Shown one piece after another: positions 19,615 through 28,600 of a stretch of DNA of 64,000 nt. Source of the DNA: Botryllus schlosseri (lineage: Eukaryota); NCBI GenBank assembly GCA_051294905.1, contig CM119384.1:6262001-6326000 (forward strand), in the 5' to 3' direction. The notes beneath the pieces were generated by a model. That model was not told where the DNA came from, did no database searches, and was given only the letters and a program-made list of their open reading frames with translations. Within the stretch, counting starts at the first letter, position 1, and each line of letters starts with the position of its first letter. The position numbers and the translations under genes are program-made.

Positions 19615-22600
19615 CTGAATAGTAGGACAAAATTAGTAAGCGCGATATGGCAACTCAGGTTACAACTTTGCAACATACCTCTCTGCTCTTGTCTCTGCTG
19701 ACAGTTGAACCCGTTACCCTGGTAACCGTTTCGACATCCGCAGAAGAATCCGCCATCTCTTCCCTGCCTGCAATCTGCATTGGGACCGCATTGGCGTCCG
19801 AATCTGCTCTGGCAATCTTGCTGCCGGGCAGGTTGACCTGGCTGACCTGGTTGTCCGGGCTGGCCTGGTTGGTCGCCACCTTGTCCCGGCTGTCCTGGTT
19901 GACCAGGTTGATCTGGCTGTCCTGGTTGGCCCCCTTGTCCCGGCTGATCTGGTTGACCTGGCTGTCCTGGTTGCCCTGGTTGGTCACCACCTTGTCCCGG
20001 CTGATCTGGCTGTCCTGGTTGGCCACCTTGTCCCGGCTGATCTGGTTGACCTGGCTGTCCTGGCTGCCCGGGCTGGCCTGGTTGGTCACCACCTTCTCCC
20101 GGCTGTCCTGGTTGACCTGGCTGATCTGGTTGTCCAGGTTGACCAGGTTGTCCTGGTTGTCCGGGCTGCTGTTGGCATTGGTAGCCACCACCGTAATACC
20201 CATCTCTGCAGTAGCAGAAGAAGCGGTTCTCATTCCCGACTTCATAGCAGTTTGCAAATTCGCTACAGTCCCTGTTGTCTTGTTGTTGGCAGTCTTCGCG
20301 CCGAGCAGGCTGTCCTGGTTGACCCGGCTGATCTGGTTGTCCCGGCTGTGGTGGTTGACAATAAAAGCCGTTGCCTACATCTCCGCCGCGACAGCTACAG
20401 AAGAATTGTCCGTCGCTAGATAACCTGCAATCCGCATTTCCGGCACATTCCTTCCCAAACTGCTGCTGGCAATCTTGCCGCTGTGCAGGCTGACCGGGCT
20501 GTCCAGGTTGCCCTGGCTGTCCAGGTTGACCCGGCTGTCCCGGTTGCCCTGGCTGGTCACCACCTTGTCCTGGTTGCCCTGGCTGGTCTGGTTGTCCGGG
20601 CTGTCCAGGTTGACCTGGCTGCCCCGGTTGGTCACCACCTTGTCCCGGTTGCCCTGGCTGGTCTGGTTGGCCGGGCTGTCCAGGTTTACCTGGCTGTCCC
20701 GGTTGGTCACCACCTTGTCCCGGTTGCCCTGGCTGGTCTGGTTGTCCGGGCTGCCCAGGTTGTCCTGGTTGGTCACCACCCTGTTCGGGCTGTCCAGGTT
20801 GCCCTGGCTGTCCTGGTCGTGTCCACACTCTTCGAGGGTTGCAGACGAATCCTCCTCCGTAGTATCCAGGTCTGCAGTAACAAAAGAATCTATTATTATC
20901 AGCTCTTCTGAAGCAATCGGCGAATTCACTGCATCTGCGATTATTTTGTCTTTGGCAGTCTTGCATTTGAGCCGTTTGTCCGGGCTGTACTACTTTCTGA
21001 ACAGTAGGTGTCGGTCTTGGTGTTACGACATCACGTCTGGCTCGGCAGAAAAGTCCGTTGCCTATGTATCCCATTCGGCAGCTACAGAAAGCTTGACCGC
21101 CAGCCATACGTCTGCAATTGGCGTTACCGTTGCATCGTCTACCAAATCGGGCCTCACAATCTTCTTGACCTACTTCTGAACCAGGTTGCTCAGTTTGACC
21201 AGGCTGCCATTGTCTGCAGTTGAAGCCTCCACCATAATATCCAGCCCTGCAGTAACAGAAGAAGCGGTTGTTGCTTCTCTTGAAACAGCGAGCGTTCTCT
21301 CCACATTTTCTGCCATTTTGCCTTTCACAATCTTCTGGTTGGGCAACTTCTCCAGGTGCTGGTATGTCATCCATTTCACCATCAGTTTGTTGCCTTGCTC
21401 GACAGAAGAGTCCGTTTCCTACATATCCCATTCGGCAGCTACAGAAAGCTTGACCGCCGGCCATACGTCTGCAATTGGCGTTACCATTGCATCGTCTACC
21501 AAATCGGGCCTCACAATCTTCTTGACCTACTTCTGAACCAGGTTGCTCAGTTTGACCAGGCTGCCATTGTCTGCAGTTGAAGCCTCCACCATAATATCCA
21601 GCTCTGCAGTAGCAGAAGAAGCGGTTATTGCTTCCCTTGAAACAGCGAGCGTTCTCTCCACATTTTCTGCTGTTTTGTCTCTCACAATCTTCAGGTTGGG
21701 CAACTTCTCCAGGTGCTGGTATGTCATCCATTTTATCCATATCACCATCAGGTTGTGGTCTAGCCCGACAGAAGAGTCCATTGCCTACATATCCCATTCG
21801 GCAGCTACAGAAAGCTTGACCGCCGGACATACGTCTGCAATTGGCGTTACCGTTGCATCGTCTACCAAATCGTGCTTCACAAGCTTCTGGGCCTACTTCA
21901 GATCCAGGCTGCTCAGTTTGACCAGGCTGCCATTGTCTGCAGTTGAAGCCTCCACCATAATATCCAGCTCTGCAGTAACAGAAGAAGCGGTTGTTGCTTC
22001 CCTTGAAACAGCGAGCGTTCTCTCCACATTTTCTGCTATTTTGTCTTTCACAATCTTCTGGTTGGGCAACTTCTCCAGGTGCTGGTATGTCATCCATTTC
22101 ACCATCAGTTTGTCGTCTGGCCCGACAGAAGAGTCCATTGCCTACATATCCCATTCGGCAGCTACAGAAAGCTTGACCGCCGGCCATACGTCTGCAATTG
22201 GCGTTACCGTTGCATCGTCTACCAAATCGTGCCTGGCAAGCTTCTTGGCCTACTTCAGATCCAGGCTGCTCAGTTTGACCAGGCTGCCATTGTCTGCAGT
22301 TGAAGCCTCCACCATAATATCCAGTCCTGCAGTAGCAGAAGAAGCGGTTATTGCTTCCCTTGAAACAACGGGAATTGTCCCCGCATCTTCTGCCATTTTG
22401 TCTTTCACAATCTTCTGGCTGGGCAACTTCTCCAGGTGCTGGTATGTCATCCATTTGACCATCTGTTTGTTGCCGTGCTCGACAGAAGAGTCCGTTTCCT
22501 ACATATCCCATTCGGCAGCTGCAGAAAGCTTGACCGCCGGCCATACGTCTGCAATTGGCGTTACCGTTGCATCGTCTACCAAATCGTGCCTGGCAAGCTT

Positions 22601-25600: not shown

Positions 25601-28600
25601 CACAGTTTCGGCGATCGGCCGGCTGTCCAGGTTGTACCGGTTGTTCCACGTCGGCCGTGCAATCGAATCCGTTGCCCTGGTGTCCGCCACGGCACTTGCA
25701 GTAGAATTCGCCATTGGAGCGCTTGAAACAATCGGCAAAGTCGTTGCAACGTCGGTTGAACTGGTTAGCGCAGTCAGAAGGTTGGGCCGGTACGTCGCCG
25801 GTCGGTTGGACAGTGTGTTCTCCCGCTGTTAATATTTACATAGGTGACGAAATCAGTCATCATTGGTACTCGGGTGGAAGGTGCAGTAACGTCGTAAATT
25901 TTTAATCGAGTACAAGTATATAAGTAGGGATTTCCGAGTAATTTATAATGCGAGTATTCTTGGCCTAATTTTGCCTGCAAAACTGAAAAGATAGAAGCTA
26001 AATTAGTCTAAAACAGAGGTTCGTAACCATGTTGCCAGCGTCCGCCTGGGGATGATTTGGAATTCAAAGGCGGCGGAAACACTCGGGGGGCGATATGGGA
26101 GGTGCTGGGACGTTATGGGGTGCCGAAGAAAATTGGCGTAACAGTACAGATGGTGTAGTACAGTGGTTCTTAACCTTTTTTCTTCCAGCGCCCCCTTTCA
26201 AAAATTATCGTGCTCCAGCGCCCCCCAACTTCATATTGTAAGGAATGTAATAAAGACAATGAGTAAGAGGGAGGACCGTAATAGCACTTCGTCAACCCCC
26301 CTAAAAACGATTGCCTTGCGCACCCATAGCGTGATAAACTGAACCTCTGAGATCTTCGCCCCCACGAACCCCATATCGTGATTTTGATGGTCAGCAAAGT
26401 TTGTGTGGCCTGGTCGCCCTAGGTACCAAAATTTTCTATAATGCATGAATGGAAAGGTGGTAATTACATATATAACTCGCTATAAACTTTTTATCCTCTC
26501 AGCCCACGTAATCAGATTTACCAGTAGCACTGAGTGAGCTGTTGTATAGGAAAATAAAGGGCACGTAATTAATAATTAAACATATTCGGGCGTGCCCGCA
26601 GGTACAATTATTCGTTACCAGGGCCGTAACAGCACTTCGTCAGCCCCCCTCCAAACAAAAAACGTTGGTCCAGGGCCCCCATAGGGTGATAAACCAAACT
26701 TCCGGGGGACTTCACTCCCAGACCTCCATTAGGCTGTCCGCTATTGGCTGATAGCCTATTAGGTATCTACATTGGGTGTCCATTTACTGAGGCAGCTATG
26801 CTCGCCTAGTCGCACGAAGCGCGAAAAATCTCACTAATTATTGATTAAATTGGTCAATATCATCGGGAATTGCATGTAAATTAGGATCAATTTTTATCCT
26901 CTCTCTGCTCATGTAAACACATTTACCGGTAGAGCTGAGTGAGGTGCAATGTTCCCTCTGAGCTGCGCACGTGCGCAGTGCTGACGCGGTCTCTGCGCAC
27001 AGGAAATCTACGTTGCGCACAACAAATCCGAAGTTATTACCTGTTTTTAGTCGTTACGCACTGTTGTCCAAGGGTCAGCGCAGTGAGTTGTTGAGTGTGC
27101 GCAGACGCATCAAAACTTAAAGCGAACATTGTGAGGTTTCTTGAAAACTGTAGGGCCCGTTACTAATAATTAAACATATTCGGGCGGGCGAGCCCGTTGG
27201 TATGACTTCGTTGCATGATGTTATTTCGTTACCCCCTGTCTGCAATATCAAAAAATATAGTATCGCTCAACGGGCATATCGCCCAACAGGAATATCCCTG
27301 TCGCCCAATCGTATACTAAACTAAAAGACGCACCAATTTCAGATTGGTATTTCCTCACTGACATATAATTTTTCCCTGCCAGATGGAATTCGTCTTCTGG
27401 GGTTCAGATTGCCAAGACAGGAACATTCGGTGTCAGTCATTTAGGCGCCCATGGACAATTAAACCTAGATGTATTTTGAACGCTATATGTAACGAAGTTT
27501 TCGGTGTTAATTTGCCCTGAATATTCATTAGGGATAAGTCCTATCACCACATCATCTACTGCGAAGCCATTTTTCTCCAGCGCCCCCCATACCGCCCCCC
27601 TGAGCCCAGCGCCCCCCATATCGCCCCCTGAGCGCTTCTGCCCCCCTTCAAAGTCGCCAGCGCCCCCTGGGGGGCGCTGTGGGCAAGGTTAAGAACCACT
27701 GGTGTAGTAGTAGTCATAGGGATATACAAAGTTCTATATATCTTTGAGATCTCGTTGCAACATTCATTCATTCCAAACAAAATTCAACAAGTATGAAAAA
27801 GAGTCATGTATTTAGTGTTGCCACGAATGCGGTGGTTTCTATATTTCATCTATAATGTGGTTTTACGCAAAATCTAAATGTTTTGAACTAGGTATTATAT
27901 ATTGCAACACACATTGTGTCCCGAAATCACTTTTGAGAGTGCCATTTGAGCCATTTGTACAGTAGACATGATTTGAAGCTTTCTGATCAGAATTATTAAC
28001 TAAATATCCTTGTTTTCGAGAGCTACAAAATATTACATCACCGAATCGGGGTGCGAACATTAGGCCCAAAGCCGATAGGTATGAGCCCGTACCCAACAGT
28101 TGTTATAAGAACCTTGATTTGATCCCGTAGATAATGAATACAATTATTAGCTCGTTAATTAGTCGAATGGTCATCGGACGCGATTCAAGTGCGAAATATT
28201 TCCAATAGTCCAATAGACCGGACTTGGAACTCGACCAATCTTATTTGGTACCGTCCTTAAAATAAGGGGGGGGACAAACCATGAAAATTTCCGAAAGGGT
28301 GCGCTGGGAGAAAAAGGGGTTGTTAAGTAGCACCGGTCTAAAATCATAAGCACTGCGGTAGCGAAAGTAAGCTAAACCTATCTTGGTTTTCTGGTCATAT
28401 TATGTTCTTACATATATGAAAGAAGAGATTACGCCAAAAATGTGGGGATGACTTCGGCAGTGGTAGTCGAAGTAATGATCATCGGTACTGAAGTATAAGT
28501 ATAAGTAGCGCTTTCCGAATCAGTAAAAAGTGAGTATTCTAAGCCTAGTCTGGCCGGAAAACTGAAGCTGTTGAGTAGAAGTAGAAGAAGTGTAAAATCA

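Follow-up and report, generated by a model that had tools for sequence, protein, structure and literature searches.

Several groups of modular extracellular proteins with large repetitive segments have been described in animals. In Drosophila, dumpy is a giant EGF-rich matrix gene in which the large exon PIGSFEAST carries about 40 near-identical repeats of 102 amino acids (aa) that undergo unequal crossing-over, with EGF-DPY-EGF as a repeating unit (PMC2930355). The polymers built on VWD-C8-TIL modules, including the gel-forming mucins, VWF, zonadhesin and Ciona Ci-GFM1, diversify by differing central modules or by one large repeat exon (PMC6109156). In ascidians, the egg-coat proteins HrVC70/HrVC120, HaVC80 and CiVC57 combine 12-24 EGF-like repeats, among them an extra 8th repeat in HaVC80, with a ZP domain and share a conserved exon/intron organisation (PMC9265791). 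The present analysis concerns a stretch of 64,000 nucleotides (nt) from the tunicate Botryllus schlosseri (assembly GCA_051294905.1, contig CM119384.1, positions 6,262,001 to 6,326,000 of the forward strand), referred to below as the window, and in particular a giant exon on its minus strand that encodes an array of EGF domains of two alternating types, A and B. With a probability of about 0.72, this exon is real and transcribed, codes in one piece for part of a very large mosaic protein that is secreted, has grown by intra-exon duplication and is kept by purifying selection.

An open reading frame (ORF) scan identified a minus-strand frame that runs without stops from 25835 to 19551. Inside it, the exon is delimited by a consensus acceptor, TTAACAG/CGGG, at 25826/25825 at its 5' end and by a consensus donor, GAGAG/GTATGT, at 19679/19678 at its 3' end; the product of the exon comprises 2,048 aa with an isoelectric point of 8.5. 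The existence of one intronless 6.1-kb exon, proposed in an earlier reading made from the DNA letters only (the sequence-only reading), which named no strand, is supported by this open frame and these splice sites; within the reach of short reads, the exon is used as a single piece. The two long ORFs on the plus strand across the array (21543-25832 and 19647-21536, up to 1,429 aa) were considered as genes and rejected as antisense by-products of the codon make-up of the repeat; they run into stops later in the same frame, and their product is Ser/Leu/Thr-rich nonsense.

Transcription of the giant exon and use of its donor site are demonstrated by RNA. At least half of the sampled sequence words are contained in 17 runs from 6 studies, and RNA mapping on four runs addressed the region 19400-25399; contig depth in the sample of run X1 was 100-290. 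The joint 19614->19679, from which 64 nt are removed with GT..AG on the coding strand, was found in 7 raw RNA reads of run X22 and in contigs of runs X1 and X6, which confirms the donor and shows that those contigs derive from RNA. The contig pieces 19679-19962, 19941-20055, 20034-20601, 20724-21096 and 25176-25399 have zero differences or gaps relative to the genome, so the passage from either flank into the core of the array is uninterrupted in RNA, and a 3.3-kb contig extends past 25399. No joint was detected within the dimer array in the four runs across the mapped region, where raw-read depth is 0-2x; the bins at 22600-24000 are almost devoid of uniquely placed sequence because identical copies are placed once. 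Runs X13 and X14, both from study P4, contain 0.41-0.42 of the sampled words compared with 0.64-0.69 in the other studies, and may carry an allele that has diverged or an array of another length.

Exactly 31 EGF units were found in the giant exon with a six-Cys regular expression. Type A, with the tail C-Y-C-x2-GYYGGG, accounts for 15 of the 31 units and type B, with the tail C-x-C-x2-G-x2-GNG, for the other 16 of 31, and by motif the units follow the order B,A,B,...,B with no exception, which bears out the strict A/B alternation of 31 EGF domains that had been claimed. The units belong to the EGF_3 family (Pfam PF12947), with profile scores of 54.9, 43.1 and 56.3 bits (cut-off 28.5) and the six-Cys pattern in 31/31 units. 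The usual EGF_3 tail is C-x-C-x2-G-[YFW]-x-G-[ND]-G; B units end in GNG and 15/15 A units in GGG, the latter being variant members of EGF_3 as judged by profile score. Among the 791 EGF_3 motifs in the best 150 library matches, the residue at the position of this Gly is Asp in 375, Asn in 343 and Gly in just 2, and none of the 791 is GYYGGG itself, so the description of this tail as unusual holds. Calcium-binding EGF domains are recognised by the N-terminal consensus D/N-x-D/N-E/Q-C together with a match to the EGF_CA profile; the Pfam scan returned no EGF_CA match, and the residues leading into the units read ...QPEDC or ...GQEAC. Unit 1 (25659-25772) is of type B by its GNG tail only: its body is A-like, and it groups with the A clade (support 97/93). 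The EGF domains carry a net charge of +5/+6 and the linkers of -2/-4. Ser and Thr together make up 5% of the product of the giant exon, which contains zero N-X-S/T sequons and is therefore not a mucin-type Pro/Thr/Ser domain.

In the core of the array, each dimer consists of an A domain of 38 aa, a 19-aa linker, a B domain of 38 aa and a second linker of 22-29 aa that begins with RAR. Tandem Repeats Finder (TRF) reported this region (21035-25280) as a repeat with a period of 357 nt, 11.9 copies, 92% matches and a score of 6939, and pairwise identity among the dimers ranges from 80 to 100%. Dimers 3, 6 and 9 are 100% identical, as are dimers 4 and 7, while dimers 5 and 8 are 99.7% and dimers 2 and 5 are 97.5% identical; adjacent dimers are just 89-95% alike, whereas those three apart reach 99.7-100%. 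The region thus qualifies as an in-register tandem array with a higher-order repeat of the unequal crossing-over type, and across the 495-Mb genome the A-B dimer is confined to this locus. Two long spacers rich in Gly, Gln and Pro separate units of the 3' flank. Spacer 1 matches Pfam Collagen (PF01391) with 31.8 bits against a cut-off of 27.2, and the segment including spacer 2 stays under that cut-off with 22.1 bits. A long uninterrupted Gly-X-Y register is not present in spacer 1, in which runs of 3-7 triplets are followed by an Asp-for-Gly change or a GG insertion that shifts the register; because the runs are this short, both spacers are read as collagen-like, low-complexity and probably flexible segments and not a triple helix, as far as their sequence indicates.

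The array evolves under strong purifying selection, which acts on both domains and both linkers. Among diverged dimers, synonymous divergence (dS) reaches 0.57 with nonsynonymous divergence (dN) of at most 0.05 and dN/dS of 0.04-0.14; by part, dN/dS is 0.11 for the A domain, 0.04 for the A-to-B linker, 0.08 for the B domain and 0.09 for the B-to-A linker, these pairs being non-independent and possibly affected by gene conversion. The linkers are therefore constrained as tightly as the EGF domains by this measure. The protein has stayed constant despite divergence at silent sites, from which it follows that the array is functional coding sequence and that the linkers are not free spacers.

The descent of the 31 units of the giant exon was analysed in two trees: one added 16 single-exon EGF_3 units from the window, and the other all 52 such units of the gene, including those in 50 kb beyond the window. 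Both trees rest on 38 columns, for which reason only branches with good support are considered. The 31 units group together (92/90 against the 16 single-exon units and 90/95 against the 52), which demonstrates their common descent. The A units form a clade (91/88) in the tree with 16 single-exon units, and A plus unit 1 form a starred clade (97/93) in the tree with 52. The B units are paraphyletic in the best tree, with B monophyly not rejected by the approximately unbiased (AU) test (p = 0.092). Of the two separate clades expected by the sequence-only reading, that of A is thus recovered and that of B is compatible with the data without appearing in the best tree. Unit 1 being A-like by descent, the 5' end of the array reads A-like, A, B. 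Two single-exon EGF_3 units farther upstream in the gene, at window-equivalent positions 88411-88521 and 80201-80311 on the minus strand, carry GYWGGG. They were considered as a source of the A type and rejected, as they are mutual sisters placed elsewhere in the tree, apart from the A type; the change from Asn/Asp to Gly has consequently arisen twice, independently, in the same gene.

Two modes of growth coexist in this gene, as had been suggested: upstream, EGF exons have been duplicated together with their introns (tandem periods of 182/375 and 194/387 nt), and in the giant exon an intron-free dimer of 357 nt has been copied, followed later by a 1,065-nt trimer of dimers. In the proposed sequence of events, a single ancestral EGF unit would have multiplied within its exon to yield all 31 EGF_3 domains, and an early split would have separated the derived A type, with Gly replacing the usual Asn/Asp in GYYGGG, from a conservative B-like stock. 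Unequal crossing-over by one A-B dimer would then have extended the array and, very recently, unequal crossing-over by the three-dimer block would have done so again. Strict alternation follows from the dimeric unit of duplication, and selection for alternation is not needed to account for it. Since the recent blocks are 100% identical, copy-number variation is likely, and the copy number of the array probably varies among individuals.

At the protein level, the segment would be an extended beads-on-a-string structure of basic EGF beads on acidic linkers rich in Gln, Pro and Gly, with two collagen-like GQP spacers. An AlphaFold2 model of A-B-A-B, computed from a single sequence and therefore weak, has a mean predicted local distance difference test (pLDDT) of 55.7, with about 65-78 in the domains and below 50 in the linkers, and a predicted template modelling score (pTM) of 0.25, which would weakly fit such an arrangement. 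Complex prediction of an A domain with a B domain gave an uncontrolled score of 0.04, which speaks neither for nor against pairing. An extracellular polymer or coat would gain length, flexibility and numerous repeated binding sites from the array, with multimerisation provided by the VWD modules if these belong to the same protein. Basic domains on acidic linkers make polyanionic partners plausible, and the composition suggests that the array probably has a mechanical or adhesive role.

Several points weigh against the account of a transcribed, selected exon of a secreted mosaic protein. The role is read from composition alone. The support for the acceptor at 25825 is indirect, from its sequence and from the 3.3-kb contig that extends past the mapped stretch. 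At a raw-read depth of 0-2x over the array, and given that short reads and contigs cannot span identical repeats, rare internal splicing and copy number lie beyond the power of these data. No orthologue turned up in the searches: when the complete product of the exon was used in a word-indexed search (length range 1,126-3,584 aa), nothing closer than 29% identity came up, and an exhaustive HMMER search of 1.84 billion representatives gave nothing above about 47% identity. As the product of the window itself is also missing from the searched libraries, this blank says little about relatives. Finally, alternation extends into the old flanks with saturated silent sites and both linkers are tightly kept, which leaves room for a functional A-B module.

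The strongest of the alternatives, though a doubtful one, is that A and B, with their specific linkers, work together as one functional or structural module, through packing or through heterotypic A:B contacts between molecules, and that selection keeps the alternation. Besides the persistence of alternation in the old flanks, it draws support from the two linker types, which differ from each other and are each constrained like the domains (dN/dS 0.04 and 0.09), and from the presence of the rare GYYGGG in 15/15 A units. The sequence-only reading had gone further and taken alternation to imply a structural A-B unit. This does not follow, as a dimeric duplication unit yields alternation without selection; moreover, no confident packing appears in the weak A-B-A-B model, with its pTM of 0.25 and linker pLDDT below 50, and unit 1 is A-like by descent, so that by ancestry the 5' end opens with two units of the A lineage before the first B. 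A functional A-B module is in any case compatible with growth of the exon by duplication under purifying selection.

It is unlikely that the copy number of the identical 357- and 1,065-nt units has been mis-assembled, by collapse or over-expansion. Copies of up to 1,065 nt with 99.7-100% identity would invite such errors, and the RNA contigs do break in the repeats and leave the bins at 22600-24000 nearly empty. Nevertheless, the frame is open through all copies, the older dimers with dS of 0.1-0.6 reveal a real array and not read errors, and the word content of the 17 runs from 6 studies agrees with it, so that an error could affect the count and not the existence of the array.

Still less probable is an exitron in spacer 2. 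The sole internal joint of the giant exon, 19932->20026, omits exactly 93 nt (19933-20025) in frame with GT..AG ends on the coding strand, as would be expected if this segment were spliced out of some transcripts. The joint was seen in the X6 contig alone, and neither in X1 nor in the raw reads of X22; 38 nt fit on either side of it, so that a cut with GT..AG ends comes easily, and 93 nt is the period of a local tandem repeat (TRF). Given this ambiguity and this period, the skip is read as a length variant of the repeat unit or as a collapsed contig and not as an intron, an allelic deletion of a repeat unit or a collapse fitting better. This variant from one study is the sole hint of copy-number variation between individuals.

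Comparably improbable is that the 119-aa A-B unit is functional as such, either as part of a polyprotein cut at RARR, similar to profilaggrin or the EGF precursor, or through A/B pairing between molecules that zips the polymer. The least probable reading, a profilaggrin-like precursor from which cleavage after a basic motif 3' of B releases di-EGF peptides of about 119 aa, can appeal to strong purifying selection on the repeat including its linkers and to the R-A-R-x with which every B-to-A linker begins (RARR in 6/12, of the furin type R-x-x-R/R-x-R-R), but the fourth residue is Q in 4/12 and P in 2/12, even in recent copies, so the cleavage site itself is not conserved, and the array lies midway in a huge mosaic protein of matrix type with VWD and Sushi modules.

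The giant exon of Botryllus is thus of an ordinary repeat-built type, a giant exon made of tandem repeats within a matrix gene of modular build, and leaves the general view of exon or repeat evolution unchanged. What the locus offers is a single gene in which both growth routes of modular extracellular proteins, copying of exons with introns and copying within an exon, are found together, and an array with three layers of age: flanks with saturated silent sites, dimers with dS of 0.1-0.6, and identical blocks of 1 kb. It illustrates that the size of the duplication unit can by itself be enough to produce strict domain alternation, that disordered-looking linkers can be selected as strongly as folded domains, and that the usual Asn/Asp can become fixed as Gly in one of two types. 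These features provide handles for asking about the role of long-linker EGF arrays in tunicate matrices or coats.

The positions of the giant exon, its parts and the surrounding modules of the gene are given in Table 1.

Table 1. Features of the giant EGF exon and of its host gene in the window (positions in window coordinates)
Feature	Position	Strand	Description
Giant coding exon	19679..25825	-	6,147 nt = 2,049 codons, phase 1-1; 31 EGF_3 domains, linkers and spacers
Old 5' units 1-3 (B-like, A, B)	25323..25772	-	diverged, silent sites saturated; unit 1 with A-like body and GNG tail
Core array	20958..25253	-	12 A-B dimers of 351-372 nt each, modal length 357 nt
Higher-order repeat	21687..24896	-	1,065-nt three-dimer unit x3 (dimers 2-4, 5-7, 8-10)
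Old 3' units 28-31 (A,B,A,B)	19701..20957	-	silent sites saturated; two long Gly-Gln-Pro spacers between them
Spacer 1	20472..20840	-	123 aa, imperfect (GQP)n; Asp-for-Gly changes and GG insertions; 75-nt period (TRF)
Spacer 2	19815..20174	-	120 aa, GQP-rich like spacer 1; 93/102/111-nt periods (TRF); contains the 93-nt in-frame length variant 19933-20025
Intron 3' of the giant exon	19615..19678	-	64 nt, GT..AG; RNA joint 19614->19679
First of five downstream Sushi/CCP exons	19441..19614	-	Pfam Sushi, 42.6 bits
Open stretch with the last Sushi exon	15711..15947	-	ends ...PRCE + stop
Upstream EGF_3 exons	29777..37271	-	one unit per 120-150-nt phase 1-1 exon, save 34034-34354 (two)
VWD-C8-TIL module	41900..46790	-	between EGF exon arrays; tblastn with Styela P0001; Pfam VWD, 45.8 bits

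Downstream of the giant exon, the raw reads of X22 splice the first Sushi exon to 18844, in the second Sushi exon. In the X1 and X6 contigs, the first Sushi exon (19441-19451) continues into the last one (~15902; 15873-15902), compared with the second (18815-18844) in X22, which reflects either transcripts that skip Sushi exons 2-4 or chimeric contigs formed between similar exons. No transmembrane segment was found in the open stretch that holds the last Sushi exon.

Outside the giant exon, the window contains about 57 EGF units on the same strand, in open stretches of 111-150 nt, most of which are preceded by cag and followed by gtgagt or gtaagt, in phase 1-1. The claim that almost every EGF elsewhere has its own exon holds for these units at the level of the DNA, the exception being exon 34034-34354. 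This exon (minus strand, 321 nt) seemingly comprises two EGF_3 units with a 24-aa linker; as the two are not sisters in the tree, it looks like the result of a lost intron and not of an internal duplication. The upstream part of the window has about 16 EGF_3 exons and about 45 Notch-type EGF exons, the latter duplicated with their introns. Two four-exon blocks of Notch-type EGF exons on the minus strand, 38463-40782 and 48244-50487, lie about 9.8 kb apart and encode near-identical peptides in the same order; they constitute a large segmental duplication within the gene, flanking the VWD-C8-TIL module.

EGF_3 exons continue beyond the window to about +92.8 kb, and the exons between +113.9 and +95.3 kb run collinear to the N-terminal VWD-C8-TIL region of the Styela clava 'zonadhesin-like' protein P0001, with 45-77% identity. 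The host gene resembles that of this Styela protein and seems to encode a huge secreted mosaic of VWD-C8-TIL modules, well over 100 EGF domains and five C-terminal Sushi domains; the VWD exons, which lie on the same strand, may share a transcript with the giant exon. In an intron between VWD exons, at window-equivalent positions 98416-99441 on the minus strand, an open stretch of 342 aa with reverse-transcriptase-like motifs (FADD) is probably a retroelement remnant, judging by these motifs. On the plus strand of the window, the neighbouring genes at 4001-5308, 8862-9896 and 11239-14001 are identified by Pfam as PACSIN-like (FCH + SH3), OGG1 (OGG_N + HhH-GPD) and hamartin/TSC1, each one uninterrupted ORF, so that a run of apparently intronless housekeeping genes adjoins a gene of more than 100 exons. 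The PACSIN-like ORF has 82% identity to a Logan protein, 68% to the cluster that contains the Styela clava protein and 53-56% to Phallusia, Clavelina and Ciona, which places the genome with a stolidobranch-like ascidian.

Comparison with solved structures gave generic EGF matches (NELL1, COMP). By protein-language features the array lies near Dumpy-type clusters with a score of 0.83, below 0.9 and so a weak lead, and a mosquito protein that contains the DPY module of Dumpy (P0002) matches weakly in sequence. The best HMMER match of the array is the Styela clava zonadhesin-like protein P0001 (E-value 6e-30), and the second-best library match is a Hydra vulgaris 'stabilin-2-like' protein, P0126 (XP_065671207.1; E-value 4.8e-26, 26% identity). 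P0126 consists of a signal peptide and seven identical copies of an EGF domain with a 24-aa linker and shares with the giant exon the arrangement of beads on long linkers, but it has one EGF type and no alternation; this comparison is made at the level of the protein.

Like the ascidian egg-coat proteins, which vary in repeat number by duplication between species, the product of the locus is a secreted EGF-repeat protein of a tunicate. The egg-coat proteins differ from it in having a ZP domain and a conserved exon/intron layout in place of one giant exon, and no sequence kinship with them was found.

The VWD-C8-TIL group stands closer. VWD, C8 and TIL modules are encoded on the same strand as the giant exon, possibly in the same transcript, and P0001 is matched in collinear order by the N-terminal exons. 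The latter protein ends in nine B-like EGF_3 units and, in contrast to the giant exon, has no A-type unit. The gene also departs from gel-forming mucins, VWF and zonadhesin in that its centre is not a Pro/Thr/Ser mucin domain and its C-terminus consists of five Sushi domains and not of VWC and a cystine knot.

Similarly to dumpy, the locus encodes a huge secreted protein composed mostly of modules of the EGF_3 type, in which one large exon of near-identical tandem repeats evolves in concert, a Pro-rich repetitive insert is present and the repeating unit comprises several modules. Unlike in dumpy, no match to Dumpy_DPY (PF21164) occurs in the array segments scanned by Pfam, a non-exhaustive search over parts of the gene showed no ZP domain, and the repeat unit consists of two folded EGF domains of two types, in a gene with VWD-C8-TIL and Sushi modules. 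The closest system in kind is Drosophila dumpy, and the closest in sequence and architecture is the VWD-C8-TIL group.

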